A DNA stretch of 64,000 nucleotides from positions 372,001-436,000 of the forward strand of contig JAHLWZ010000004.1 in NCBI GenBank assembly GCA_020536535.1, in the 5' to 3' direction. Below the pieces are notes generated by a model. It saw nothing but the letters and a program-made list of their open reading frames with translations, ran no database searches and had not been told where the DNA came from. The DNA is from Pelomyxa schiedti (Eukaryota; Protista; Evosea). The position numbers and the translations under genes are program-made. Shown here piece by piece: positions 3,890-59,900 of the stretch (its first letter is position 1; every line of letters begins with the position of its first letter).

Positions 3890-6061
3890 ATTAATGCTCA
3901 TTAACTACTCCAGATGTTAGTGGGTCTATGTGTGTTACGAGTGAGGTTCCAACAACGAGAAGAGGGAAGTCAAAGTATGTTTCAAGGCTGGAGTGCGGGC
4001 AGCAAGCAGTTACTTCACAATTGGTTGCACTGGCTTCCGCTAATAAAAACTGCAGGGTCGAGCTAGGTATACCTCCTTGCCACCATAAATACCACTTAAG
4101 ATCCATCCGCACTTGACAAGTGCAGTCACTTTTAGTGATGACGTGAGCATTTTTGGTGATGGAACAAATACCTGTGTTACTGTTGCTGGGGATAAGCTTA
4201 ATGACTGGGATCAGAAAGTAATAAAATCCCCACTGTCTTAGTTCCAATCGTAGAAATCTGGGTTCACAGTCAGCCTCCTCATAGCATCATCCTCCTCTTT
4301 TTGTTTTTGTAGTATAAATGCAAATTAAATGTGTTGCCAAACAACTAGGGAAAACTTTGTAACTATCAATTGTTAGCTGCCCCCATACTAGTTGCCTCTC
4401 TGATATAATAGCCCGCTGGTGATCTCACTCAAAATTAGATACCACTTTATTGAACACAACCACACATTGAAGTGGCAACAAACAGTTTTACTGTGTACTG
4501 TTGGGTTGAATTTGCTTATTTACTATCAAGACACACAGCCCAGTCTCAGAGTTGTCGTCAAATAGCACTTGCCTCAAAATGGTGCCGCTACAAAGCTAAC
4601 CAGCAACAACACTCCAACTTGGTGCTGGACTGTCATGGCACTCTAATTGCACCCAAGGAATTATGGTTGAACTTCTAGAATAACATTCATTAGGTAAGAG
4701 CCTTAACCAACCTCTGGCCACACTGTCAGCATACCCTTCTAATTGTTTGTAAAAAGAAGAATCAAGACGCAGTTTAACGCCATGTGCATTGGCAATATTT
4801 TGGGTCATCCTGCGGTCTTGAATCTGTTAAATATTAATTATTTAAATACAAGCAAATGATTCTGAGACGCATACAGTCTTAAGATTAGCCTCAGTGGTAA
4901 ACAGAGCCAGAGCTTTTTCTTTAGTGAACTGGTTTTTGCCACTTGATGGAAACCCAGGTCCTTGGCATATTTTCTGTTAAACCAGTGGAAAAGAGAAGTC
5001 CATAGCATAGTTTCCAAGTTGGAGAGGTGCTGGAGGTGGAATCTCTAAGAACCGGTTCATTCTTTCGTGGGAGACATTGTCTACTCCTCCAGTAGGAGCT
5101 TCCAGTGGACTGTACCGGTTGGGGGCACACTCTTACGCCTTGTAGGCAGGGCTTCCGGTCTTTCCCACTCACCCTTGAGTGTGTATACACTTCTCCCTGT
5201 GCTGAATCCACAATGCTTGTTTCTTCTTCAAGTTCTTCGTCGGGTTGTTCTTTGAGTTCTTCTTCGAGTTCTTGGAACTCTTTGTGCTCTCTGATTTCGT
5301 CTTCAAGATCTTCTTGGAAATTTGCTTTTGGTTGGTGTAATATAGATCGGTGTTCGGCGGGCAAAGTCTGCTCTTTGTTTCCAGTCTGTCTTTCTGAAGT
5401 GTAAGTGGTTTCATCCTCACCCAGTTGGTTTGCCTTGGTCTGATGTTCGACAAGGGGATGGACTGAACACCACTTTTGGTTTTTTCTTTTGTTGGCTGGA
5501 TGGGGACTGATGTTTTTTGCAGCTTTCTTTCTCTGTTTTGTGGAGAAGTGGAGATAGGTCCGTGGTTCTTGCGGCACTGAACTTCGGAGGTTTTCTTGGT
5601 TCTTCCAGTTCAGATTTCCTAAGGCGTTTACTGGGAGATACCTCCTGCGCCGAATTATCAGCAGTACTAGGCTTGCTGGAACTAGTACTAGTAGTTGTAT
5701 ATGTTGTGGTAGTAGAAGATGATGGCGAGGACTTTGGCACTGAGGAAGCAGAGTTTTGGTGACCAGCAAGTGGCAGGTTCACTCCAATGGATTCAATTGA
5801 GTCAGTAGGGCTCCTCCTTCATGGCACAGTTGGCTCCGCCACCCAATAATTATCTCTTGCATCATAAGTATCATCGGCGCCATCTTGATCCGCAGCAGTA
5901 CTCACTTCTTTCCTCATCCCAGCTGCTGCTGGAAAGTGCCCCGATTGTGCTGGCATTGATACACGCGGAAGCGGCGCGAATGGCGACGATAGCTTGGCCC
6001 TTTTCTCCAGTATTAGCAAAGCGTGAGGGCGACGATGGTGCTTATCGTTTTTGGTCGTCAT
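3890..6061 (-). pseudogene. Multi-exon gene of unknown function with low-complexity S/K-rich and acidic segments; interrupted by in-frame stops (probable pseudogene)
   Basis: ORFs 5819..6061 and 5417..5782 are in the same frame, separated by a single TGA. An acidic segment (QEDLEDEIREHKEFQELEEELKEQ) and exon-like blocks (PLEAPTGGVDNVSHERMNRFLEIPP; IQDRRMTQNIANAHGVKLRLD) follow with plausible GT-AG introns. The 3' end is uncertain. Confidence 0.3.
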
Positions 6062-6176
6062 TCGCGTCCCTGTAGTTCCTGACCACCATTCACGGGGTTG
6101 TTCTTCTGATTTGAGTATCCAGGGAAACGGAGGATTCTCGGAAATACCAACTTAAGTTTATTGTAATCTGAACCAC

Positions 6177-7868
6177 ATGGGTATTGATACCGGTGTTGTG
6201 GTTGCTGAGGAGGAAATCGAGGGTGTGCTCAAAACGATGACCGACGAGCAGTTAACAGGTTAGGTCCGGCTGCCGTTTTTGCCAGCGACATCGTGGGTGC
6301 TTCGGGATTCCCACACGACGTTTTAGGGTTTCTCCGTGAGGCTTCTTCCAAGTTGGGTCGCATGGTCACAATTTTGTCGTCGTGGCATCCAGATATACCT
6401 CTCCCTGTCAAGCCAATGAAGCGACCAAGGGTTGTGTTTTCTGATTCTTTTTCGCTTTATTCCTCTCTTGCCAATTGGATTGTGGGTGGACTAATTCGGT
6501 CTCGAAATAGTGTTGTTCTGCTCTTGAAGTTTTATGGCAGTATTTGCACAGTGAAACTAGGCTTGTGAAAGGAAATCTGTTTTGGACGATCCACATGGCA
6601 AAAACTACAGTTCACGTTGTGCCAGGCCAAACATCTTACATTTTATTTACTGGCATTCAAAAAACTAGATTTCCTCTGGCAAAGATACTGGCAAAAAAGA
6701 CAAAAACAAGCCTGTCACGTTTGAAAGTGCCGCTGAAGCAACAAGCTTCATGCATGAGCAAATATCTAAACAAAAATCCCTTGGATTTGGTGTCCCACCT
6801 GCAGTTCAAATCGTCGATCGGCTCATAGCAACAAAATATGGCCCTGATTTTCGACCTCCACCAAAAGATACAAATGAAGAGGAGGAGAGTTGCTTTGAGG
6901 AAGTCGAGGATGATGAGGATGATGAAGAGGAAGAAGAAGACGATGATGACGAGGCTGCAGAAGAGGCAACTACCAAGAATGGTACAAGTGACAATGAGGT
7001 GTCAAGTTCCCCAAAACCCAAAGACCCCCCTTCTAAGAGAGCAAGAACAGTTGTAATTGAGAGCAACTCTGGCAGTATTGAGAGTCACAACGGTATATCT
7101 GAACTGCTTGTACTCAACCTCACCAATTTTAGATGCACAACTTCACGTACCCCTTGAAGGAATAATGAAACTACCTCCAAATTTTGTGGTGCAGGTCTTT
7201 TCCTACTTGAGCCCAAAGGACCTATGCTCTTCGAGTTCGGTTTGTCACTATTGGCATCAGCTGTGCTCCGCTGATATCATATGGAACCAGTGTTACCTCA
7301 GAACCTGGCCTGATGCAGATCCCACAAGAATTAAAAAGGTACCGTGACATCAACTTTGTGGGGGAGGTGTAACGGGCTACAGATTTGGAAATTTTTCGCC
7401 AAGGGTAAAACTACCTGGAAAAGAGCCGTACTTGCACAGTACAACTGGGATTTATATTCTTCCTATTGTTCCTATTGTAACTTTGATGTTGCCGGTGCTG
7501 CAGCCGAGTACATTGTTGCCAGAGCCAACAGGAAACACAAAGGCTGTGATTCTGACAGCCCTCTGGATCACCTATTGCATAGCAAATCCTATGGTGAAGA
7601 AGTATTCTATGGTCCGGTGTACATGTACAACTCCAGTGCAGTTGCACACCTTAATGAGCTGCTTGGGGCAATATCCAATTTCACCAGTGCAGAAGAATTC
7701 TGGACACCTGAGGAAAAAGGCTGGCCCAGAACACTTGGGGGAATCTGCCCCTCCTGTGATACTCAGTCAGAGGATGCCCTTCTTGTTGCCCACCACGTTA
7801 CCAGTTTAAAGATGATTGCGCAAGCAGCAGGGACCCGCCACTGTGCCCTCCTGAAGTACCTGGACTGA
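6177..7868 (+). CDS. F-box protein with acidic N-terminal linker, multi-exon
   Basis: F-box motif LPPNFVVQVFSYLSPKDLCSSSSVCHYWHQLCSADIIW. Poly-E/D tract at about 6880-6965. Proposed first exon MGIDTGVVVAEEEIEG from 6177. Last exon ends CALLKYLD* at 7868. Confidence 0.75.
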
Positions 7869-9233: not shown

Positions 9234-9522
9234 ATTGTACCCCTTTATTTTGTTTTTCTTTTGTGGGAATTGGTGGGTATCGTGAGGGTATGTTGCTTCA
9301 ATTTCTGTATTGTAGTCTTCTTTTGCGTGCGTACGGAAAAGAGGACAATGAGAGTGGAACAGTTGCGATTTGATATCAATTAACTTCTTTATAAATCTTC
9401 GGCCGGAAGTTTTGGCAAAACGAAAAAAGTACCGCAAGTACGAAGCCAACAACGATCGGTATAGCAAACCCGAACCCCCCCTTTTTTCCGTTTCCCGTGC
9501 ACTGAGCCACTTCACAACAAAG

Positions 9523-11295
9523 ATGGATAAGTCACACAAGTCACTTCCACATGATGTGCTCTGGCGCTGCATGCTGACTGGAAGGGGTGCTGGGAGAACA
9601 CACCCGCGTGCCTTTGAGTGCCACTTCCGTGTTGGTCAGCGGGAACCAAGGGGAATTTCTCTCTTCCAGTCGATGGCCGAGGACCAGCACGATCCCAAAA
9701 TGCTCTGGATGCTTGGGGAGTTCTACCTGCGGGGGCAGGGAACAGACCCTGACCCAATCAAGGGCCTGCAGTACTTATACAAGGCCGCGGATGCCGGCAG
9801 TGTTCCTGCATTATGGGCCATATCCCAGTGCTACTTCACCGGCATGTACGGAATCGAGAAAGATTACGCCAAATCTGTTCCTTTTCTCCAGCGCGGAGCT
9901 GATGCCGGAGATCCGGATGCGCTGTATATTCTTGGAAACTGCTTCTTGGGCGGAATGGGAGTGGCTGAAGATCATAGCAAAGCGGCTGCTTTATTTCAGA
10001 AAGCTGCCGATCTTGGACTTCCTGAGGCATGCGTGGATCTTGGAAAACTTTACCTTCAGGGTAAAGGCGTTCCGGTTGATGAGAGAAAGGCCTTTCCTCT
10101 TTTGCAGAGGGTTGTAAATGATCCCAAGGTTGGATGGGAGGCTCAGCTCAATCTCTGTGACTTCTACTTGTATGGTATGGAAGGAGTGCAACGGGACGTG
10201 CAGAAAGGTCTGTTGTATTTGCAGAAAGCTGTTCAGAAAGGCGATCCAGAAGGTTTATTTCGCCTGGGCCAATGTTACAACGTTGGAGTTGGAGTCGAGA
10301 GAGATATCAAAAAGGCAGTAGAGCTTTTTCAGCGGTCTGTGGAAGGTGGTTGTGCTACCGCAATGTACAGCCTCAGCGAGCACTACCTGAAGGGTGATTG
10401 CGTTCCACGTGACCCAGTAAAAGCTATTTCACTTCTGCAGAATTCTGTTGAGATGAACGATCGACAAGGATTATGGCGCCTCGGCAGATGTTATGACACT
10501 GGAGAAGGAGTCACGAAAGATGTAAGAAAGGCAGTTGAACTTTACCAGAGGTCTGTGGGACGTGGTTGCGTATTAGCAATGTACAACCTCAGCAAGCACT
10601 ACATGAGCGGCGAAGGCGTTACATTTGACCCTGAACAAGCAGTCTCGCTTCTAGAGAGAGCTTCAGAACATGGATACACTCCGGCAATGTGTAAACTTGC
10701 TCACTATTACAAGGAGGGAAAGGGAGTTGATGTGGATATTGGGAGGGCAATTTCGCTCTTGAATAAGGCCGCTGACGCCGGATATATTAAAGCAATGAAC
10801 GAACTCAGTGTCAATTACAGCTTGGGACAAGGTATTCCCATTGACATGAATCGCGCCGCTTCGCTGATTCAAAGAGCATACGATATGGGGAGCAATGAGG
10901 CCGCAATCGCACTTGGATGGGGTCTGTTGATGGGTGCTTACGACATGACACGCAACGTCCAAAGAGCCATTCCAATCCTGAAGAAAGCATCTGAAGAGTC
11001 ATCTGATGCCAAAACCATGTTGGCAATGTGCTATGAATGTGGCGTGGGCGTGGCCAAAGACATGAACATGGCCAACTCCCTCTTCCAACAAGTCATTGAC
11101 AAGGGCTACACAGAGGCTATCTTCAAGGTTGGTGCATACTTAGAATCCGGTGCCTTGCATGGGCCAAAAGACATCGCCAGAGCGTTTCAACTTTACAGAA
11201 GGGCTGCTTGTGCTGGAGACCAAAGGGCACAGGCCAGGTTTTCTTCACTCTTGAGCTTGTGCTTGAACGTGTTTGAGGAGCTTTCGAGTACGTAG
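9523..11295 (+). CDS. Sel1-like repeat (SLR) protein, about 14 repeats, intronless
   Basis: Uninterrupted ORF with repeated A...LG.CY..G.GV..D..KA..L.QKA...G units. ATG at 9523 (MDKSHK) is taken as the likely start. Confidence 0.92.
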   Translation: MDKSHKSLPHDVLWRCMLTGRGAGRTHPRAFECHFRVGQREPRGISLFQSMAEDQHDPKMLWMLGEFYLRGQGTDPDPIKGLQYLYKAADAGSVPALWAISQCYFTGMYGIEKDYAKSVPFLQRGADAGDPDALYILGNCFLGGMGVAEDHSKAAALFQKAADLGLPEACVDLGKLYLQGKGVPVDERKAFPLLQRVVNDPKVGWEAQLNLCDFYLYGMEGVQRDVQKGLLYLQKAVQKGDPEGLFRLGQCYNVGVGVERDIKKAVELFQRSVEGGCATAMYSLSEHYLKGDCVPRDPVKAISLLQNSVEMNDRQGLWRLGRCYDTGEGVTKDVRKAVELYQRSVGRGCVLAMYNLSKHYMSGEGVTFDPEQAVSLLERASEHGYTPAMCKLAHYYKEGKGVDVDIGRAISLLNKAADAGYIKAMNELSVNYSLGQGIPIDMNRAASLIQRAYDMGSNEAAIALGWGLLMGAYDMTRNVQRAIPILKKASEESSDAKTMLAMCYECGVGVAKDMNMANSLFQQVIDKGYTEAIFKVGAYLESGALHGPKDIARAFQLYRRAACAGDQRAQARFSSLLSLCLNVFEELSST

Positions 11296-32236: not shown

Positions 32237-33967
32237 ATGAGCAAGCAACGTAGCGACCACGACAGCGGAGATCCAGCCAACAGGGGGGTAATGGACACCA
32301 TTGGGGTGGCGTCGCCGTCATCGTCGGCTGCAAACGACGAGATCTCGATACTCATGCCTCCGGAGGAATCTACGCCCCTTAGCACGACATCGCCATCACC
32401 GTCGCCGTCAGTTTCCGGTGACCCTGAGTGCAGTTTTTGGGGAGCCGTCGCTTTGAGTCACAAGCATAGAAAGATGCTAATCAAACTGGAGAGAGGTTTG
32501 TTTAGTGCTTAGATTCTCTTTTTTTCTTCGTTACTGGCGATGTTACGCTAACGTAAAACTCTCCCAACTGCAGACTGGTTTGTTACGAGCTACATAAGCG
32601 ATTACATTTTAACGGCAGTAATCTTTATCATTGGCGGGTATGACTTTTTCTAGATTTTTTTTTTTTGTTTGTTTGTTTGTTTGTTTGTTTGTTTGTTTGT
32701 TTGTTTGTTTGTTTGTTTGTTTGTTTGTTTGTTTGTTTGTTTGTTTGTTTGTTTGTTTGTTTGTTTGTTTGTTTGTTTGTTTGNNNNNNNNNNNNNNNNN
32801 NNNNNNNNNNNNNNNNNNNNNNNNNNNNNNNNNNNNNNNNNNNNNNNNNNNNNNNNNNNNNNNNNNNNNNNNNNNNNNNNNNNGTTTGTTTGTTTGTTTG
32901 TTTGTTTGTTTGTTTGTTTGTTTGTTTGTTTGTTTGTTTGTTTGTTTGTTTGTTTGTTTGTTTGTTTGTTTGTTTGTTTGTTTGTTTGTTTGTTTGTTTG
33001 TTTGTTTGTTTGTTTGTTTGTTTGTTTGTTTGTTTGTTTGGGTAAACCATTCACATAGAATTATTGAGAAAGCTGTATCTCCTTACAACATGGAGATTCC
33101 TGGTGGGGCCGACAACTACAATTTGCAGTACACCTATATGAAGGAAAGTGTCCCCACATGGCTGCTTTGCATTCTTGCTTTTGTGTACGCAAAAAATACT
33201 TCCAGTGTGGAATCTTATGCCTTGGTAGCGTCCCGACATTGGCTGTGATATGTATTAATTTAGCTCTGTACGCCCTCCGCTGCCGAAGGTCCGGATATAC
33301 TGCGTTCGCACATGACACTCACAACTTCATCCTTGGAATTGTGGAGTTTTTTGCTCTGGCTATTTTATTTGCATCAATAGGGAAGGTTCGAGGTCTCCTC
33401 TTGTTCCTCATTGTAATCACTTGCACAGGTTGTAGCTGGCAGATACAGGTAACTCCTCGAAACGCATCCTCCTCCAACATCTTTCAGCTTTATTTATATC
33501 CCTAAGACCCAATTACTTTAACATGCCCGATGATGTGCGTGAATCACAAGGCAGGAAGAGCTTCCCTAGTGGTCACTCCACAATCGCATTTGGAGGATTC
33601 ACCTTCTTGAGCCTCTATCTTGCAGGCAAACTGAAGTATGAAACCCATAGGTAGCACTCTCTTAAGTTGCAAACAGAGCTTTTGTAGACACGTCGGGTCA
33701 ACTCTGGAAACTCATCTTGGTTCTTCTACCTGAGATTCCAGCCCTCTTAATAGCTCTGAGGTAAAGCAATAAGCATTTGTAATCTCATAGTTACGCAGCC
33801 GGACCCGTGATTACTACCATGACTTCTCAGACATTGTTGCCGGTGCCGGTCTAGGGATCGCTATAGCCTTTGTCTGCTACAACTCACTCTACTACCCTCT
33901 CAACCACCCCAATTGCAATGAACCAAAGAGGAGGACCCCTATAGTATCTCTCCCTCTACGGAGATAG
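32237..33967 (+). CDS. PAP2-family lipid phosphate phosphatase (LPP/DPP1-like), multi-exon
   Basis: Catalytic motifs K..AGRYRPNY, SFPSGHS and [12 protein letters not shown], with hydrophobic TM segments. Stop TAG at 33965-33967. Confidence 0.9.
32664..33040. repeat. (TTTG)n microsatellite in an intron, containing a 100-N assembly gap (32784-32883)
   Basis: Directly visible. It explains the spurious FVCL/QTNK ORFs. Confidence 0.98.
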
Positions 33968-42171: not shown

Positions 42172-44224
42172 TCAGTCAATAATGATGGTTGCTTGTGGAA
42201 TACGCTGTTGTGGTGTTTGAGGTGGTTGAGGGTGAGGCGCAGGAGCCGGGAGGGCGCCGCGCGCAACGTCAGGCATCTCGGGAATGCGGTTTGCTTCCTC
42301 CTCCGCCTTATTCTTTTTCAGCAAGGCTTCAAAGCAGTGAAAAAGCTGAGCTTCCCTTTCTTCAATCTTCTCCTTTGGCGCCTTTGGATTGCTGGTGAGC
42401 CAGGTGAGTATTTCGTCACACGTTTGCTTAGTCTGGATACAAGTTAGGGAAAACTAAACAAAAGTGGATGCTCACCTGGTGCACGTTTTCCTCAAGACGG
42501 GCCTGTGCCCTATGGCGCCTTTTTTCCGCTTCCCTTCTGAGGTGGTATGCTTCCTGTTTCATGGCCGCAATTTGCTCTCGTGTGAGTCCAATCCTCAAGT
42601 CATTCAGGGCGACCTTTCTGCTCGTATCACTCTCCGCAGTTACATCCACCATACCATATCTGTCACAATTGAAGGTCACAAGCACCAGCTTTTCCCCATC
42701 TCTATTTGTGGGCAGCAGAGGCAGTTTAAACTCACCCAGACAGATACCCCTGCCTTGAATCACCCTGATTGTTACACTCGCACTCCTGTTGCTGGTGTAG
42801 ATATGACCCACAATCCTGAATGGAAACCCCTTGTTCTTTGGCACAATGACTTTCACTTTGGTGTCTGGTTTCTCGACACCAAGGCTGTGAGGAGTTACGT
42901 CAAGCAGCAGAATATCGTTAAGACAAGGGCTGGACTTGGCGGCGCCGGAGAGAATAGCAGCCTGCACAGCTGCACCATGTGCCGCGGCCTCCTCCCAATT
43001 ACGGATATTGTTCGGCTGTAATCTGTGATCGAAAAGCTCTGAGACCAACTTCTGTATCATGGGGATCTGGGCGGATCCGCCAACCATGATGACCTCACAA
43101 ATGCTTATCTTAGAAACCGGTGGATCTTGAGATTGCAGTACTTGATCAATTAGGCCCACAGTTGATCTGAAAAACTGCTTGTTGACTTGCTCAAAAAAAG
43201 AGCGAGTAATCTTGCCCAAGTAGTTGATGCCAGCCAATAAGTCATTAATTTCCACAATGGCCTCTTCTTTCTCAGAAAGTGTTATCTTGGCCCGCTCACA
43301 GGCAGTGCGAAGCATTCCCAGAGCTCTAGAATCACAATGCAGGTCCTTGTTGAATGTGGTCCTGAAGTCAGTTGCAAAGTGCTCCACCAAATTATGGTCG
43401 AGCTCCTCTCCACCAAGATGTGTGTTTCCAGCAGTCGCCAAGACATGAAGTACTCCTCCATTCGCAAGAAGTAGAGTGACATTCACTGTACCACCTCCAA
43501 TATCGAAAACAACGATGTGGCCATCTTTTCGGTATCCCATAGCCACTGCAGTCGATTCATCTATGAGCCTAACTGGATGGAGACCTGCGATTACCGCCGC
43601 GTCCCGAGTGGCTTTTCTCTGTACTTCGTTGAAATCCGCTGGGCACCTGTTGGGAGATATGCGGGATGAGAAGGATAAAGAGAAGCACAGGGACACAAAC
43701 GTGATAACTGCCTGGTTGAACGACTTTCCCAAGTAGGATTCGGCAATATCCTTCATCTTTGCAAGGACCAGTGACAAAATTTCTTCTGGCGTGATCAACT
43801 TGATAATACCACAGTCTCTCACTTGAATAAGTGGGAGCCCAGAGTTGTCAACGATCTTGAACGGCCAGTTCCTCATGTCAGCCTGAAGGTTAGCATCCCC
43901 TGTCTTCCTCCCAATGATCCTCTTGATATCAAAAATGGTGCACTCTCGATTTCGCTCAATCTGCGCCACTGCCGCCTCCCCAACGAGCGGCCCTCGGTCT
44001 GTGAACGCCACGCAAGTTGGAGTGGAGATGTTCCCCAGCTCGTTTGGCAGTACCTTCACCACACCACCCCTCCACACTGCGACGCGACAATACGTAGTAC
44101 CAAAGTCTATTCCAACACCGATGGGCTCCTCTGCAGCAGATGTTACCGGTAACGCCACGAACGAGGAACCTGTGGTTGTTCCCGCAGATCCCAATGCAGA
44201 TGGAGGTACTGATGTCGCCGACAT
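42172..44224 (-). CDS. Divergent Hsp70 (2 introns), atypical substrate-binding domain
   Basis: GIDFGTT, TPTCVAF, DIKRIIGR, FDIGGGT, GNTHLGGE, MVGGSAQIP and linker DILLLDVTP. Last exon TKQTCDEILTWL...IPQATIIID*. Confidence 0.92.
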
Positions 44225-44772
44225 GTTATTGTGCTTGTTGTTGGATCTCGCCCTGAGCGTTTGTGTTGTTATTTTTTTTGTGGTTATGAAATTATCCAGG
44301 TGATGAAGCCAAAAAAAGATCGACGCCTGTGGCACCCAGAATCATTTTGGTGGGCCATAGACGCCGTAGAAAGATGAAAGAAAAGAGGAATTGGGATTTT
44401 AGGTGCTTAGTTTTCAGACACGATTTAATTAACGTCAATACGCCACATAGATCTTGGGAAAAAGGGGTTTTCAGGAATGGACGCAGGGGATATGTCAAAG
44501 GGCTGACGTAATGACAGGTGTGACAAACGGGCTTAGATTTTCTATCCAAATATTTTTAGCTCGCCACAATTGGGTCAATTTGAAAAAAAAAACTGGAGGA
44601 AACAACAAACGGGAAACGGTTCCCGTTTTCTTGTTTTTTGGGATTTTTTTCTTTTTTGTTTGCCAGTTGAGTGTGTTTAGAATACTGCAAAACTGATTGT
44701 CATATGTAGTTTACATGGGCTCCACCATATTTATCGTAATGTATAGTTGTACAGTTGTCATAATCCCCCAGT

Positions 44773-50557: not shown

Positions 50558-53500
50558 ATGCCATCACGAATAAAGCCGCAACAACCGCGGCTGGTGAAGC
50601 GTATACAACATGTCGCTGGTGGTGCTTTGAGATCTCACCTTGTTGGATTGTCGCACTCATCGGTGGACGCTGTTGTAAAGTCTTACGTGGTGCCTTCGTC
50701 GCCACCGGAAGAGCAGCTGGAAAAAGTGGTTTTGGATCCACCTAAACTCGAATCCCCTGTGAGTGTGATGCCGGCTTTGATTGATGTGGCGAATGCAACT
50801 TTGCCAGGAGCCTCTTTACCGCCTGTTGACATAGGAAGAGATGAGTTTACTTCCGACGACACACACGGAACATGGGCACATAGAGTGGCGAAGGTGACAT
50901 TTTATTCTTTTTTCAAAAAGAAAACATGGGTCACTAACGTGAGAGAACTTTTTAACCTTAACAAGGTCTATGACCCCTCTTCTATGGAAAAGCTACCCTA
51001 TTTCCCAGAGGCATATTTTGTTGCCAGGCGAGACGTTCTTTCCCGGTCTTATGTGCAGAGGTCATCTATTATCGTAATTGAACTTCATATTGGAGGTTTC
51101 TACGTAAGACAAATACATGCTCTTACCTACACTCTTAGTTGATGCCTTGAGTAAGTATTACTTTCGGGTTCTAGTTATTCGTGGTTCCAGAGAGAAAATT
51201 GATACTGGAAATGCCACCAAGGGAATAATGTACGCGAGCACACTTAGTGATGCACAAGCCATCTATGGGTCTCTTGTGCGAGAGAAGGTCGTAATTAATG
51301 ATACAAATACAATCTTAAAGAAAATAGACCTCAAACATGAACAAGTATAAAAAGATCATTTTGTCATTTGCAAATATGGGAACAAGCACAAGTACCCTTT
51401 CTCTCATTGAAGAAATTACCTTACACATGCTGCTAAGTTACACCAGTTTCTGCTTTATCAAAAGACGTTCGAGATCTTCTCCTTCATTTATACAAGGAGT
51501 GTGCTCTACAGCTTTCTAATAAACAAATCAACTTCGATAAAGTTTCTCCTCCTCAAATTGAAAAAGCCCTTGTTGTTCTATACAAAATGCGAGAAGTATG
51601 ATATCACACTGGATGCCAGTCATTTTTTTAAAACAAAAAATAAGGAGCTGAAATCCAATGATGTCATAGAGGCTACAAAAGCGTCTGCCCTTTCTTCCGA
51701 ATTTTTTTCTCTTGTTCCAGTTGGGCAATCTAGGCAAAAAGTTTTTCCACTCCTTCTACTCCACTTTTACACTGTTTCTAGTTGATTAGCACAATGGAAC
51801 AAGTCTTGGAGTGGCTAGATTTATTACAGTCGATGAAAGATCTTACAAATCTTGGAGAGGCCTCCTTTGATATGAGTGGAAATTTAAATGATGTTGACAT
51901 GCTGTCTGCAGCACTAATTTCCCATTTTATATGACTCTAAACAAAATGAAGATACTACTCTTTAGGTTGCGATATTGACCTGGTCAGTCCGTCGTCATCA
52001 GAATATGCAAATATTGTTGAGATTATAGGTCAACGCAGGCAGCGTAACGGAGGAGGGCCTCTTACAATAGGAAAGATCTTCAAAGCACATAGACATATGG
52101 ATTTATCATCATTTACTAATGGAATATCCAATCATCAATTGTTATTCCATGGAACTGCAATAGGTCTCACTTTCACTCTCTTCTCGTCCACTCACTTAAA
52201 GCAAGGGAATTGGCTTGGTATATTGTCAAGAGGCATGCTTCTGCCCCAAGTGGTCGTTAAGCTAGGAGTTAAACGTACCAATGCTGGAAATATGGGGGCT
52301 GGCCTTTACTTCGCCGATGATCCTATGACAGCCTTGAAGTATTCCGCTACTGGTGCCATGGGTGCTATGGGTACTAAGTATGTTTGCATTCTTTCAACCT
52401 TTGTTTAACCCATTCTAAGATACCTATTGCTATCCAATGTAGCTCTTGGAACAGTTAAAGATTTGTATAAATTTGACTCGAGCCTTAGCTCACCACCCCC
52501 TGGATTTGATAGTTGTCACGGCGTAAAAAGAACAGCAACATCACCAAGTGATTTTGATGATGATGAGTAATATCTCCCAAAGCTTGACATCTCAAGAGCT
52601 GACCTTCCAATAGATTTATTATTTACAATACATCGCAACAACACGTGCAATACTTGATTGAAGTTGACAGCCCCGGTGTGACAACAATCTCAAGCACTCC
52701 TCTCTTGTCCCCTCCAAAAAAGCCTAGACCAATTGGGCAACTATCAACATCTATTCCAGAAGCTCTCCCCGACCTTCCTCCAGTAACAATATCCTAGTAC
52801 CTCACATACAACTCATGTCTTTCCATGTTTTCCCAGTCAAATGAAAAGGCTGGTCTTATGTCTAGCTCAGGGACTCCCGTACCTTTGGAGGCCGTAAGCA
52901 TTCACGCAAAACTCATTGGTACCTTGGCAGCAAAATTCTCATTATTTATCTTTCCGGATAGATCTTGTGGCGGAAGTGGTGATGTTACAAGAATTCAACA
53001 ATGTTGGGGATGAACCCATAGAAGCTAAATATGTTTTCCCGCTTGACGAAAAATCTGCTGTTGTTGGCTTCGAGGCATTTATCAATCGTACTTTACAAAG
53101 AAAAGAACCCTACTAACTGTGAATAGACAAACACATTGTTGGTGTTGTTAAGGAGAAGGAACAGGCACATAAGGAGTACAAGGCAGCTATAGAACGAGGT
53201 GATGGTGCCTATCTCCTGGATGAAGCTAAGTCAAGTGTTTTTACTGTATCTGTTGGAAATCTACCTCCAAAAACCAAAGTGGTGATCAAAATTTCATGTA
53301 AGCACCTCATCTCTAAGCCGCACACGTAATTACTTGACATTGTCAGATATTACGGAACTTGCTATTGAAGGAAATGCACGTAAATTTGTTTGTCCAATGA
53401 ATCTTGTTGGTCAACAAAAGCACAGTGCCCTAGCACAAGTTTCTCAATCTACCACAAAAACTGTAAATACAGTACAACCTCAGGTGAAAATAATTCATCT

Positions 53501-56500
53501 ATCTTCTTTTTTTAAGTACATTAGGGTACGTTCTATATGGAGATTTCCATTAATATGCCCCACGTCATTCACGCTATTGAGAGCCCCTCCCACTCCATTC
53601 GTTACAAATCAACACCAAAGAAAGCAACACTGTTCTGGCTTGATCCCAGTTTGCTTTTTTTTTTTTAAATCAAATCGAACTAACATTCATGCAGATCCCC
53701 CCACAACCGATTTCATTCTTCTTGTCCGGCTGTGTGATGTCCGTACTCCGTTCATGTGGGTAGAACGAACACCCACAGATATATCCGTTCCTGAAGTGGA
53801 GGAACATGTAGCTATGGTTGCATTGTACCCTTCTCTTTCCGAAAATCTTCTATCCAACTCAGAGTGTTCGTCTTACCTCCCATCTTTTTGTGCTGATATT
53901 TTAATAAAGACACCCTTCTTATTGATCAATCTGCCAGTATGATTCCTTCTCTCTCAGTGTGCAAACAAGTGGCCCATCACCTTGGTATGAACTACTGTGC
54001 TTCCTACGAAATATATTCATAAAACAAGTCCGAGGAATTCCGCTGATGGCTTCTTTTAATATTATAACATTTGGCTCTGTGTTTGAACCACTGTTCCTTT
54101 CGCCAATTTTAAAAACTACCAGTTCTGCTGATCAAAGTGCTCTCTCACATATTTCTGTACTTCACAAAAAGTACTATTCATAGTGATAACATCATCAGAA
54201 ACTCCAAGGTGACTGGGGAGCCAGTATTCTTTGGCCAGCGCTAAAATCCACACTCTTACAAATCGAAATCAGAGACAAGATGCCAAAATCCAGCACTGAT
54301 TCATTGATTTCCAATCTTTTCATTATTACCGATGGTGATTTTTCTCATGATTCCCAAGTTTTCGATGTGTGTTTAAAAAACCAAACATTAACTTAACACC
54401 AACACTTCAAGCTCATCCGTGATCACTGCCAAAGGCCTGGAAATAAGACACGTATATTTTCTTTTGGGATTGGGACAGAAGTACATAGGCACAACATTTT
54501 CACACTTGCCCGCCTTGGAGGTGGCGCTGCCGAATTTGTTGCCTCCAATAACCCACTTCGACGGCAGGTTCTAAATCTTCATTCAATAGTAAAAACGTGC
54601 TAATCTGTATCCTCAAATAGGTGTCAAGGCAACTGGAGCGGGCACAACAACCTTGCTTAAAAGATATTTCTGTAGAGTGGGGTGCACGTCATAGTGTTGC
54701 AGGTCCTGTGAAGCAAGCGCCACATAAGCTCATGTCCCTATTCAGTGGAGAACGCGTAATCATTTTTGCTTTTATTCCTCAAGATTGCCACCAGGTATGT
54801 GCATCAGTGTCTTGCACAAAACCTGAAGGAATGAAAGGTTACCCTCCAAGCAGGCAGAAGTGATTCAGAAGAGAAATTTCAAATAACTGTGACGTCCAAC
54901 CTTGCTGAAACTGTTACGGGGCTAATGTTGCATAGACTTTGTGCTCGATCTGTGGTGAGGTATAAAACAAGCACCTCAACTATTTTCCTCATTAAATGAA
55001 GAGACTGGGAAGATCAGTGCATCGCAGAGGACAGTGTATCAAGTGAGCTGGCAAGAGTTCAAGTGAGATCTTTTGAAGGCATATCTCTTTCTAAGAAATG
55101 TGTAGAGAAAAGGGGAGATAATAGAATTGGGAATTCGGTACTCTCTTGCCACCACCTTAACCTCCTTTATCGCTGTAGAGGTACTTCCTTTCACGTTTCC
55201 TTTTCTATTTTAAGTTCCAGTAGGAAAGAAGTGAAGAAGAGAAAAAAGGGTATCTTTTACAATACTGCACTAAATTGAAATAAAAGTATCACAGTTTAGT
55301 GAAATTAAAACCCACACCTCCGATAACTGAGCTGGCAAAGAGCGAAAAAGTTGACGAACTTCCGTTTTGTACAAATTGGAAGGAGGCAAAGAAAGAATTG
55401 TTTCAGTTAAACAGCATTCCTTTTAGGTACTCCTCGCTTCATATTAGTCAGTCATCTTCTAATTTACCTGAAAAAGTGAGAGGAAGAACTATGGAAGGGC
55501 GTACCACTCTACTGTGTATGATTTTTGGGCTCGGGCACCAGCAGAGACGCCTTTACCACCCTTAAACACAAATAATCCCTGTAACTGCAAAATTTAACCA
55601 CAAGTAGTATATTAATAGCTTTTCCCTATGATAGATTGGACCCTAACATTCCCTGAGCAAGTTCCTGTGCGGCACGATCTCTTTGGCTTCATGCAGGATC
55701 AAAATGTCTCAGTAGAACTATTGTGTAAAAAGAAAAGCAGAATGCCAGGCATCCTAGCTCGCCGCAAGAGGGAAACGTTCTCCAATGCACTTTTCTGTGA
55801 AGATTCAGAGCTTAGTATAGCGCCCTGTTGTTCTAGTTCATCATCCAGGGGACTTATGTATTCCCCACTATCTCCCCCATGCATGGAGGCGGAGGAGGAT
55901 TCCTTTTGTGCAGAAGAAGAAATGTACGCACCTCCCATGCGACTCGCTTCACCAGCAGCGTCAGCCGCCGCCGCACCACCACCACCACCACCACAAGCAG
56001 CAGCAGCACCATCTAAGGCTCTGCCACCCCCAACTACTACGCCGTCGCCTCCTTCTGCAAAACCCCAAAGCGCCAAGGCAGCAGCACCGCGGGCACAAGA
56101 GGACAAGAGGAAGGCCGATAGAAGAGCACGGTGTGAAGAAGAGGTGGAGAATGTAAAGAAGGTAATGAGGGAAAATATTGAGCACGTGTTGGAACGAGGA
56201 GAGAGGATTGAGTGCCTTCAAGACAAGTCAGCTGATTTGGCATACGCTGGTGCAAGGTTCAAATCACTGTCCTCTCAGAGGTTACCCCAATTTTTGTAGG
56301 CACGTTGTCTAACTGAATAAAGGTATTGCTGTTCGGCCCCTTCGTATGCGCCGATTTCACTGGCCTGCGATTCTTCTTATTCTAGGAAAAAAGCTGGCTG
56401 TTTTATAGCCACTGCTGCATTTGGTACTCCGATGGATACCAGGATAAATGTTTTGCGTTGCTTCAGGTTCGTTGCCCCAAGCAGGAGAACGAACACTCCT

Positions 56501-56789
56501 CACCCTTTGTAGAGACACAACTCTGCACAGCCATTGGCTAGGGCGGTCCTTCACTGCCCTTTATTATACACTTTCCCCGCCAGTTGCCACGTGGCTGACA
56601 AAGCACCCTCTAGCCTGCGCACTCACCAGGACGGCTTTCCTTGTACCAGTAGTCCTGTTACTTGAACACTGTGGATACTCCAAATGTACGGATGTGGATC
56701 ACAACAAAGCCGCCAAGCAGACACTCCTCTGGGCTTTGGCGATTTTGTTGGTGCCCTTCCTTCTCATCCTCTCCGTACTCGTTCTGTGA
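50558..56789 (+). CDS. PARP4-like poly(ADP-ribose) polymerase: PARP catalytic + VIT + vWA + R-SNARE motif + CFI-box-CTERM + C-terminal TM, multi-exon
   Basis: PARP: LLFHGT..N.LGILSRG.LLP, GAGLYFAD...ALKYS, VALG, SCHGV, DDE|FIIY (H-Y-E triad). VIT: PVPLEAVSIHAKL, EAKYVFPLDEKSAVVGFEA, FTVSVGNLPP. vWA: LIDQSASM, FNIITFGS, IFIITDG, IFSFGIG. PARP4-specific TSFIAVE...PPITELAKSEKVDELPF. An in-phase splice path continues to the stop at 56789. Confidence 0.9.
56135..56280 (+). other. Synaptobrevin/VAMP-type R-SNARE coiled-coil motif inside the PARP4-like CDS
   Basis: EEEVENVKKVMRENIEHVLERGERIECLQDKSADLAYAGARFK, with the zero-layer Arg in LERGE. Confidence 0.88.
56396..56660 (+). other. CFI-box-CTERM-type domain split by a 46-nt intron (56467-56512)
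   Basis: Spliced: GCFIATAAFGTPMDTRINVLRCFR|DTTLHSHWLGRSFTALYYTLSPPVATWLTKHPLACALTRTAFLVPVV. Confidence 0.85.
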
Positions 56790-56906
56790 CAGTAATTGTA
56801 TCAAAAGAAAAAAAAAATGCGAATAAGCGAAGGAAATAAGAAAAAACAGGATTTTCTATTAACCTTGCAGTTGCACATAATTAATTAAAACCCCTGCAGA
56901 TCAGAC

Positions 56907-59900
56907 ATGAGCAGCGCCGGGACAACGGGCAGCAGCAAGACACACACAACCACTAAAAAACCACAAGCACTCAAGTCGAAGACACGCAGAAAGAGTGGTG
57001 GGCGTGTGGCGAGCGTAAAACGGAATGCAAAGACCAGAAAGGGCGCATCGAAGAAAATGCTGTCAGGCAAGTCCAAAGCGCGGTCGAAACGAACAGCGTT
57101 GAAGAGCGCCCCGGTTCCTCTCGTGGGGAAAGCTGCACTTCAAAAGCGTTTGGATGAGGTGTGCACCACGGTCTTCTTGCCATTCAATAAGTAAATGTAA
57201 CTGTTCTATTTAAGCTCTTGGAGCCTTTCACCCGCAAAAACCGTAAAAGCCGCTCTGCTGACTGGCCGACAGCTTCCAAGGAAGTTGTAAAACTTCTGGA
57301 TACCTACAAAACTCCTCAAGGTGGCAATGTCAACGAAAAAAACCAAAAATAACCCTACAACAAGCACTTGAAAAAACCGTTGATATGATTATCAAGCAAA
57401 TGGCCACTCAGAGTACAGTCCTTGTTGGTCTCTCTACTTTACTGCAGGAGGTCGAACTCACTCTCTCCTATTTTCCCTCACTTTTGACCTAAGGTTATGA
57501 AAAGATTCCCTCAAATCACACTGACATCTCTGATTACCCGAATGGATTCCCATTTTCCTCTCAAAGCTCCTGCAAAGGTACACAAGCTCCCTTTGGGAGG
57601 AAAAACCCAATTTGGGTTATTTTTTCTGATTTTACTGACTTTCATAAAAGGAAGAAGGCTCTGACACCTGCATACAATATTCAAATGCATTGTCTTCCCT
57701 TCTCACTGCGTCACTTCCTGTTGTGAGTGAACCTGAAAAAGTGACTGTCTGTATGCAGTTGTTACGAAAACTCGTTCCAAGGTGGGTTTCAGGGGAGCCT
57801 TTTGGGCGAATATCAATGAACTTGATCCAGAAGGTAGCCAAAACAGTAATGCGTGTGTGTGACATGTTGCAGATACCAGAAGCAGACCTACGTACAATAA
57901 TTGCGGAACTTGTTCCCTTATTAGTCGTTTCCCAACAATGGTCTATTTATAACCTCCACTTGATGTTAACTCTTGAGCCTTCCTTCAAGGTTATTGTTTA
58001 TGTAATTCAATGTCTTTCGTAATAGGATATATTAGGCTGAAGTGCTCAAGTTAAATCCTAGAATTAAATTTATACAAATCAGTGCCCCAGTTGTACCAAG
58101 GCTTCTTTCTTTCTTAAAGGTTGGAAACAAAATGATGATAAATGCTTAACAAAAAACTTAGACAAAAGTTGGACTTGAAGCAATAGGCAATCCTCACCTG
58201 TGGCAGGCAGTTGTGCGCAGTGCAACTCGGCAAAAAAATTCTCTTGATGTTTTGCACCTTCTCTGGAAAACGTTTGTTGAAGGCATTCTCTAAGAGTTTG
58301 TTCTGGACACTTATGCGAGTCACAGAAAAGCCATTCATCAATGAAAATCGTATCACTCAGGTGCGTCTGACCTTGTCAGCAGCCGTTTTTTGTTGCTGTT
58401 CTCGAGAAATCCTTATCAAATTCCTTGCTGACGGAAAAGTGAAGCTGATCTGTTCCCTTCTTGGGATGCGTGGTTTGCCCCTAAAGTATTCTTGGTCATG
58501 GGTATGCGCTCGAACATACCCCACAATCATCAACACATCAAAAAGTCCCATCAAATGAAAGCATCTCCTGATGCATGTTGCTTATTTCTCCAAAATTTTT
58601 TGGGATTTGCCCTCAAACCAGAGGGGTATGTTGACCATATGGTTGTTAATCTAATTCAGCTATTTCTAGGGGTACTTCCCTCCCGAATGCATTATGTGTG
58701 AAGGAGCTACTTAAACAGACTCCTAATCAATTTGTTAAGGATTATGTTACTAGTTTAATGAGAACTGTTCTCAGTTCCAGGTGAGTGGCGTGAAAAGTAT
58801 TTTCTTTCTCAAATAGTTTACAGAGATAAGAGCCTCACATCCTGGCTCCTTGTTCTTATTGTATCAGGAATAAAAATTCTTGTAAAAAGAGCTTGTATTG
58901 ATGAAGACTCGTTATCGTCATACTTGGTTTCCTTTTTTTCCGTGGCACATATTCAGAAACCACTACGTTGTGTTCTACACTTCTCCCTCATACACTCACA
59001 CTTTTTAGCCTCAATTTTGTCTCGGTTATCTGGCAAAGCTGAGTGGCTATTTTCTCATAGTGTTACCGAAACTGCCGCCTTTGGTAGTACTTTAACGGAT
59101 CTAATAAGCATGCTTGTCAAGTGCAAGCCTCTTACAGAAGGTACAACCCAAATGCAAATGAGAGTGGCTCTCAATCTTCACCGTAGGGCAGGTGATGTGG
59201 AAAGCTGGCATAAACACACTTTACAACTTCATACTGAAATGCAGTTGTATGTCACTCTCCCGGTTGAAGAGGTGGTTACTCACAACTTTTTCTAGTGAAC
59301 AAAGACATTTGGGCTCATGTTCACCTAAAGGAGCGAAGCAAAACCCAATTATGTGAATTGCTTTCTTCTCTCACTGGTCTGTGGACTGAGGTGGATTATT
59401 CCATTGCACTTTGGATGGTTCTAAGAAATTAACAGGCGGAAAATACCACAAATGGTGTCGTTCCAGCGCACTTAGGCTCACTTTTTCTTTTGTGCAAGTC
59501 TCTAATAGTTTATACCTTCAGTAATAGTGCCGCACTAGAACCTCTTCAGGTTGAGATTACCTCTTTACACACCTGAACCAAAAGATCCTCGACAGTCAAC
59601 TCTAATAACTCATTTTCAGAAACTAATAGATTCACTAAGCCGCCTACAACCGTTGTTATGTAAAGCAGCACTTCCCAAACTTCACACTTATAGTCCTGGT
59701 ATGTAAGTAAGTTACCTCAGACCATTGTACCCAAATATTCCTAGAAGAAAACGAGAGCTTTTCTTCTTTAACAACGGCTTTCTTACATATACTGAAACTG
59801 AAAAAACCGTGGATCTTGACTCCATCTTTTAAAAGTTTTGAGTAATTGCCCCCCTTTTCTTGAAGCTTTCTGATCAGTACATCCAGATCAATTTCTCCCT

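Follow-up and report, generated by a model that had tools for sequence, protein, structure and literature searches.

To our knowledge, only a few regulators (tomosyn, STXBP5, and amisyn, STXBP6) have so far provided R-SNARE motifs that stand apart from a membrane anchor. Here we describe another such motif, in a 64,000-nucleotide stretch of the genome of the anaerobic amoeba Pelomyxa schiedti (contig JAHLWZ010000004.1, positions 372,001 to 436,000 of the forward strand; this whole stretch is called the window, and our positions are counted from its first letter). The motif is encoded near the end of a gene for a PARP4-like protein, P0001. Like P0001, tomosyn and amisyn combine a large non-SNARE body with a single R-SNARE motif that has no adjoining transmembrane (TM) segment, and non-fusogenic bundles with Q-SNAREs are expected. 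They differ from it in being soluble, in carrying the motif at the extreme C-terminus, and in having bodies of the WD40/Lgl or PH type, whereas P0001 has a PARP-VIT-vWA body, an internal motif, and a foreign anchor (a CFI box followed by a TM) that comes 119 residues later. No tomosyn chain was among the matches in the PDB (E up to 0.01), and Pfam found no WD40 or PH domain in P0001.

Other known systems resemble this protein in one part or another. VAMP7, VAMP8, VAMP4 and Snc1, R-SNAREs of endosomes and exocytosis, share with it the zero-layer Arg, the invariant residues, and a motif that is 43-52% identical. However, P0001 has no longin domain, juxtamembrane linker or adjoining TM, and its zero layer is separated from the TM by 147 residues instead of 31-44. 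In lipid-anchored SNAREs (Ykt6, syntaxin-11/19, the SNAP-25 linker), cysteines adjoin a SNARE motif that has no TM of its own. The cysteines that follow the P0001 motif differ in being only two, in being internal rather than C-terminal, in having no CAAX box, and in not being conserved in the paralogs. PARP4 itself contains the PARP_reg, PARP catalytic, VIT and vWA domains in the same order as P0001, but the C-terminal part is replaced in P0001 by a variable cassette, the CFI box and the TM. No BRCT domain was found in P0001 by Pfam at E up to 0.01, and the cassette and CFI box stand where a PARP4 would have its C-terminal region for binding the vault protein MVP. We know of neither membrane anchoring nor a SNARE motif in PARP4. 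Finally, in the integrated decoys of plant NLRs, a conserved scaffold displays at a single site copies of host proteins that were captured and that vary; the scaffold of the P0001 family is unrelated, and the likeness is one of analogy only.

The fusion of PARP4 with an R-SNARE is so far unique. When the exon that encodes the motif was compared by HMMER with 1.84 billion representative proteins, only P0001 scored below 1e-10, and no second example of the fusion was found among these representatives. The other 53 matches were short VAMP7-like or brevin-like proteins, for example from Diversispora, Guillardia (VAMP7A) and a coral, and there was one further match to a 589-residue synaptobrevin-CorA protein. 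The paper describing the genome mentions neither SNARE, PARP nor vault (PMC8887013). One paper listed by a literature search on P. schiedti and SNAREs, PMC10703272, deals in its title and abstract with Preaxostyla flagellates. The P0001 sequence is public, and its R-SNARE feature is undescribed.

The R-SNARE motif and its gene

The peptide that the sequence-only reading from which this work started had quoted as an R-SNARE motif is encoded on the + strand (frame 2, 56171-56239). Profile searches place that peptide well inside the synaptobrevin family; the absence of a SNARE HMM match, which would have refuted that reading, was not observed. Pfam Synaptobrevin (PF00957, gathering score 26.4 bits) matches residues 164-215 of the exon's open frame over profile positions 3-54 of 89, with an E of 3.4e-12 and 46.4 bits. 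The score is 43.4 bits on full-length P0001 (residues 1424-1475) and 49.5 bits on a 76-residue piece alone, and our own R-SNARE profile, made from the 53 relatives, gives P0001 74 bits. The Arg of “LERGER” (R1450) aligns with the Arg of ARGE/ERGE in the PDB chains of VAMP8 and VAMP4, which we take to be their zero layer. Heptads counted from R1450 give, from layer -7 through to layer +8, the residues R C V V M N V R I L S L G F S R. The heptads had been described as near-canonical around an Arg zero layer, and this holds for R1450 and for layers -5 to +7, which are canonical, but not for layers -7, -6 and +8. When P0001 is aligned with the 52 nearest R-SNAREs, no columns but R1450 and G1451 are invariant, and the near-invariant M1440, N1443, L1457 and L1464 are all retained in P0001. 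By its sequence this is a genuine R-SNARE motif, far beyond chance.

The best PDB matches are VAMP8 (E 1.8e-8) and VAMP4 (3.7e-7), then Snc1, Nyv1 and VAMP7, while Synaptobrevin-2, Sec22b and Ykt6 match more weakly, at around 1e-3. Identity to VAMP7 and brevin motifs is 43-52%. A longin domain (PF13774) is present in 11 of the 52 nearest relatives, and Pfam finds none in P0001. A tomosyn-like, Sec22-like or Ykt6-like origin was considered and rejected on the order of the PDB scores and on domain content. A word-index search with the motif yielded four candidates and no match, a result that is uninformative since HMMER found 53 R-SNAREs.

P0001 is deposited in GenBank as [quoted passage not shown]. 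Our searches were run exon by exon until exhaustive HMMER returned this full-length protein, whose residues 1264-1477 are 100% identical to the exon carrying the motif. The + strand is an uninterrupted open frame at 55619-56296, and the joined exons from 53695 to 56789 form a single open frame of 818 codons. The motif makes up the last 55 codons of its exon, and its end coincides exactly with the exon border. Introns in this eukaryotic window are very short. Evidence for splicing comes from four single-cell RNA-seq runs, all made on one sample in one study, whose contigs are used here over the region 52800-57400. The joints that bound the exon, 55580>55635 and 56280>56323, are both seen in RNA, and one 1767-nt contig connects the exons 3' of the vWA domain to those encoding the SNARE motif, the CFI box and the TM. 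A 46-nt intron at 56467-56512 splits the CFI box, and its joint is seen in all four runs. Together with the joint after the motif and the 13 GT..AG joints upstream of it (42-54 nt), there are 15 RNA-confirmed joints in total, and the frame is open throughout.

The motif had also been said to be followed by RYCC. This is true of the spliced product; in the genome, the two are interrupted by the 42-nt intron at 56281-56322. The length of this intron is divisible by three, and it contains in-frame TAG (56297) and TAA (56318) codons. Its retention would yield a protein that ends six residues past the SNARE motif, without CFI box or TM, a layout similar to that of tomosyn; none of the RNA contigs of the four runs retains it. 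Separately, at three positions in the CFI-box exon (56591, 56602 and 56672), the X1 and X3 contigs depart from both the genome sequence and run X2. Two of these differences are synonymous and one gives K1556R, and there are none in the SNARE motif.

Distance to the membrane and origin of the anchor

In P0001 the zero layer is located 147 residues before the terminal TM, and the end of the motif is 119 residues from the TM and 139 from the C-terminus, in agreement with the earlier estimate of about 140 residues between motif and TM. The first hydrophobic window after the zero layer, the CFI helix, is 108 residues away. In the relatives, the hydrophobic window begins 31-44 residues past the zero layer (median 36, one outlier at 83; measurable in 24 of the 53), and the spacing between zero layer and TM in P0001 is thus 3-4 times that of these 24 proteins. 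Positions 55-89 of the Pfam Synaptobrevin profile, which cover the linker and the TM, are unmatched in P0001. The residues that come after the motif, RYCCSAPSY, do not form a basic/aromatic juxtamembrane motif. The Cys pair C1480-C1481 (56327-56332) lies two residues past the motif, and there are more Cys further along in the linker.

In v-SNAREs the motif joins a basic/hydrophobic juxtamembrane motif directly (PMC6990648), and the coupling has to be tight, with the helix unbroken up to W89/W90 (PMC7815645). In reconstituted systems, inserting at least seven helix-breaking residues into the linker brings SM-protein (Munc18)-stimulated fusion down to its basal level; basal, SNARE-only fusion of liposomes tolerates long linkers (PMC6990648). 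Because of the spacing and of these published linker-insertion results, we read the P0001 motif as non-fusogenic, and it is almost certainly uncoupled from force transmission.

Structure prediction gives a similar picture. In an AlphaFold2 model of residues 1405-1617 (mean predicted local distance difference test, pLDDT, 79.8), there is a single helix at 1413-1478, whose end falls precisely on the exon border, followed by 26 residues with a pLDDT below 50 (1480-1505), by the four helices of the CFI box (pLDDT 82-94), and by a last long helix at 1587-1616 that corresponds to the TM. In the alignment used for folding (A1), seven residues of the CFI motif are out of place in the homologues. A Foldseek search of the PDB with the tail model found nothing below an E of 5. 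The CFI box had been placed between motif and TM, and the motif described as uncoupled from its anchor. NCBIfam profile NF041770 confirms the first point, with the two exon pieces of the box matching profile positions 1-23 and 18-66. The second is upheld by the unmatched end of the Synaptobrevin profile and by the predicted disordered linker, helical domain and short spacer that separate the motif from the TM.

There are only two hydrophobic stretches in P0001, a moderate one in the CFI helix (1557-1579) and a strong one at the extreme C-terminus. A hydropathy scan of the whole protein found no N-terminal signal peptide. As the only strong TM is C-terminal and there is no signal peptide, we infer a tail-anchored topology in which the whole protein faces the cytosol. 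Reading the terminal helix in terms of a signal peptide or GPI anchor was rejected, the N-terminus being without a hydrophobic stretch.

The origin of the anchor can be followed in other proteins. When the last 518 residues of P0001 were used in a word-index search, three Pelomyxa paralogs that are also named PARP4 (P0055, P0056 and P0057) were found, together with long surface proteins of prokaryotes that have a CFI box at their end. P0055 (94 bits) and P0056 (90 bits) have a CFI box, and a terminal TM, that align with those of P0001, and neither protein has an R-SNARE motif, by Pfam or by the profile of the 53 relatives. In the prokaryotic proteins (P0058 and P0062-P0066), a signal peptide comes first, then large surface-type domains and a Gly-rich spacer, and the CFI box, TM and Arg cluster follow. 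In the amoeba versions the CFI box and TM are kept, the signal peptide and Arg cluster are absent, and about 20 polar residues are inserted before the TM. Since it is shared by R-SNARE-less paralogs and by prokaryotic proteins, the anchor belongs to the CFI-box module. Judged from these shared tails, the SNARE piece came without an anchor of its own. A literature search for “CFI-box” returned no paper. In the prokaryotic proteins, the order ending in CFI box, TM and Arg cluster resembles a sorting signal.

A variable cassette among the paralogs

The exon that ends in the SNARE motif is the longest of the 31 in the gene, where the median exon length is 135 nt, and it occupies a hypervariable part of the protein family. 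Among the four PARP4 paralogs, identity is 40-87% over residues 100-1250 of P0001, falls to 10-16% over residues 1251-1500, and recovers in the CFI box. The variable block runs from just past a conserved xPxW motif to the CFI box, and in P0001 it consists of exactly one exon, which we call the cassette. An intron before the W of xPxW is present at the same position and in the same phase in P0001, P0055 and P0056. The intron inside the CFI box is present in P0001 and P0056, and absent from P0055.

The contents of the cassette differ from one gene to the next. In P0001 it is the R-SNARE motif found by Pfam; outside the motif the cassette is Pro/Ala-rich and of low complexity, and its first half has no relative by HMMER among the 1.84 billion proteins and no usable match in the language-model atlas. 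In P0056 the cassette contains an exact Ras/Rap switch-I effector loop, FCDEYDPTIEDSY, which matches residues 26-42 of Rap1b/KRas. Most of this loop is encoded by a 42-nt mini-exon (L002:6925-6966, residues 1511-1524 of P0056) just before the CFI box. In P0057 it is a whole Ras-family domain (residues 1436-1575, E 4.5e-45), and the protein ends there, without CFI box or TM. A Cys-rich hydrophobic stretch at about residues 1228-1260 of P0057 resembles a lipidation site or membrane patch. The cassette of P0055 has a coil at residues 1295-1335 (L001, within 5568-6524) with a weak likeness to Q-SNAREs. The atlas places this coil, at 0.85 and so short of the level that counts, among the SNARE/V-SNARE_C (Q-SNARE) clusters, and as a SNARE it is negative in Pfam and the PDB (E up to 10), with the R-SNARE profile, and in hhalign against the R-SNARE alignment. 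By eye it resembles the zero-to-+7 half of a Q-SNARE; this is a lead and not a finding. The Cys pair C1480-C1481 is conserved in neither P0055 nor P0056.

The rest of P0001 resembles human PARP4. The closest PDB match of its catalytic domain is the catalytic domain of human PARP4 (E 1e-42), and the FHG, YF(A/S)D and DDEF motifs are conserved in an alignment of the two. We take these to be the H-Y-E positions of PARPs. The features of the gene are collected in Table 1.

Table 1. Features of the P0001 gene, with positions in the window
Feature	Position	Strand	Residues	Details
P0001 coding region	50558..56789	+	1617 aa	31 exons; exon-by-exon mapping of the GenBank protein
PARP_reg, before the catalytic domain		+	250-334	Pfam PF02877, E 4e-9
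PARP catalytic domain	51995..52668	+	367-547	Pfam PF00644, E 9.5e-26
VIT domain	52885..53350	+	602-712	Pfam PF08487, E 2e-34
vWA domain (VWA_3)	53915..54537	+	858-1021	Pfam PF13768, E 2.5e-11
Cassette exon	55635..56280	+	1263/4-1477/8	646 nt; RNA joints on both sides
R-SNARE motif	56117..56280	+	1424-1478	Pfam PF00957, PDB matches, layer table, AlphaFold2 helix
Zero-layer Arg codon (CGA)	56195..56197	+	1450	Aligns with the invariant R of 53/53 relatives
Intron after the SNARE motif	56281..56322	+		42 nt, GT..AG; spliced in RNA contigs of runs X1, X2 and X3
Linker R1478-G1503	56323..56398	+	1478-1503	26 aa, predicted disordered
CFI-box-CTERM	56399..56642	+	1504-1569	NCBIfam NF041770, 79.3 bits (cut-off 40), profile positions 1-66 of 69
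Terminal TM and stop codon	56724..56789	+	1597-1617	Kyte-Doolittle 2.9 over residues 1592-1617

Elsewhere in the window, a long tandem repeat (TNKQ or LFVC, depending on the frame) at 32628-33250 surrounds a run of N that marks an assembly gap. Two long open frames, at 9370-11295 and 42428-44335, look by eye, one like a Sel1-repeat protein (+ strand) and the other like an Hsp70-like protein (- strand).

Possible roles of the captured motif

We give a probability of about one half to a model in which the motif serves a tail-anchored ADP-ribosyltransferase/VIT-vWA scaffold as a non-fusogenic handle for binding Q-SNAREs. In this model, an R-SNARE motif of the VAMP7/brevin type would have been captured into the variable cassette exon of a PARP4 gene, without its own juxtamembrane linker and TM. 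Held by its C-terminal anchor, P0001 would face the cytosol, and its SNARE helix would zipper with Qa-, Qb- and Qc-SNAREs up to about layer +7. The force of zippering would not be transmitted to the bilayer, and the resulting bundle would be non-fusogenic. The handle would then bring the ADP-ribosyltransferase/VIT-vWA body to Q-SNARE complexes, and once docked it could occupy these in place of a fusogenic VAMP, either as a side effect or as its purpose. The sequence-only reading had proposed a decoy or regulatory SNARE, a view that our results support in part, and had suggested that the adjacent CC may be palmitoylated. As the cassette is hypervariable and holds other captured host pieces in the sister genes, a “bait” or a “docking adaptor” is as plausible as a “fusion inhibitor”.

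Several points weigh against the Q-SNARE-binding handle. Three layers, -7 (R), -6 (C) and +8 (R), hold polar or charged residues instead of hydrophobic ones. Both Q-SNARE binding and the lack of fusion are things that we infer from family knowledge and from the spacing. As there is no orthologue among the 1.84 billion representatives, purifying selection on the motif is not demonstrable. The cassettes of the paralogs hold unrelated captured pieces, and the piece in P0001 could likewise be a bait or a relic. Lastly, lipid-anchored SNAREs such as Ykt6 and syntaxin-11 can still support fusion, and a Cys pair does follow the P0001 motif.

The sister genes suggest a broader, tentative proposal, which we consider rather unlikely as it stands. 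A PARP4-like family of P. schiedti, of which three of the four members examined here are anchored by CFI box and TM, may swap between its paralogs an exon-sized cassette made of captured trafficking and signalling pieces: an R-SNARE, perhaps also a Q-SNARE, a Ras effector loop, and whole small GTPases. These pieces would be either baits through which interference with SNAREs and GTPases is reported, or adaptors that send the ADP-ribosyltransferase to the partners of the copied proteins. In a sharper version of this proposal, the R-type helix of P0001 would pair with the Q-like coil of P0055.

Taken for P0001 by itself, the bait or integrated-decoy idea is unlikely. The cassette would be a VAMP mimic offered to attackers or binders of SNAREs, such as factors of bacteria that the amoeba takes up or keeps, with the PARP/VIT-vWA body as sensor or responder. 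Such a role is consistent with paralogs that diverge sharply inside the cassette (10-16% identity, against 40-87% outside it), with the R-SNARE, Ras switch-I loop, Ras-family domain and weakly Q-SNARE-like coil found there, and with the several prokaryotic endosymbionts that P. schiedti hosts, some of them in vacuoles (PMC10579272). However, an immune or surveillance role is purely conjectural, the pattern is drawn from four genes only, and a docking adaptor accounts for it equally. In addition, we know of no precedent for PARP4 or a VIT-vWA protein as the carrier of a decoy.

It is also quite unlikely that the motif is a relic, that is, a scrap of VAMP captured by chance into a fast-evolving, low-complexity linker, where it would have no SNARE partner and would serve at most as a helical spacer. 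The confinement of the fusion to one gene of one species would fit a relic, as would the Pro/Ala-rich surroundings without relatives and the loss of hydrophobicity in the terminal layers. On the other hand, the core is near-consensus, with 43-52% identity to VAMP7/brevin motifs and every invariant position kept, and the gene is transcribed and correctly spliced, with the end of the motif at the exon border.

A working, fusogenic R-SNARE is less probable again. Palmitoylation of C1480/C1481 would tie the end of the motif to the bilayer and make the distance to the TM irrelevant. The position of the Cys pair, the further Cys in the linker, and the tolerance of basal SNARE-only liposome fusion for long linkers (PMC6990648) all speak for it. 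However, P0001 has neither a hydrophobic layer +8 nor a basic/aromatic juxtamembrane motif, the paralogs do not conserve the Cys pair, and an N-terminal body of 1400 residues would sit between the fusing membranes. Finally, although the genome was derived from amplified single cells (PMC8887013) and all RNA runs come from one sample of one study, a chimeric assembly or a gene model that merges PARP4 with a neighbouring VAMP-like gene is extremely improbable, as independently assembled RNA contigs show GT..AG introns at every junction they span over 54792-56513, which is all of them, the joined exons can be read through 818 codons, and the flanks of the cassette are shared by two paralogs on other contigs.

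Like tomosyn and amisyn, P0001 would use an R-SNARE motif outside a fusogenic SNARE. The motif is natural, expressed and near-consensus, and its fusion partners are an ADP-ribosyltransferase and a prokaryotic-type membrane anchor. If the motif does bind Q-SNAREs, it would provide a direct link from ADP-ribosylation to the fusion machinery, as well as a natural experiment on the maximal distance between a SNARE motif and its anchor. The unusual context in which it was found may carry more weight than the motif itself. In an amoeba that carries intracellular prokaryotes, the Ras loop and Ras domain at the same spot in sister genes point to an undescribed way of building protein families that copy core cellular machinery.

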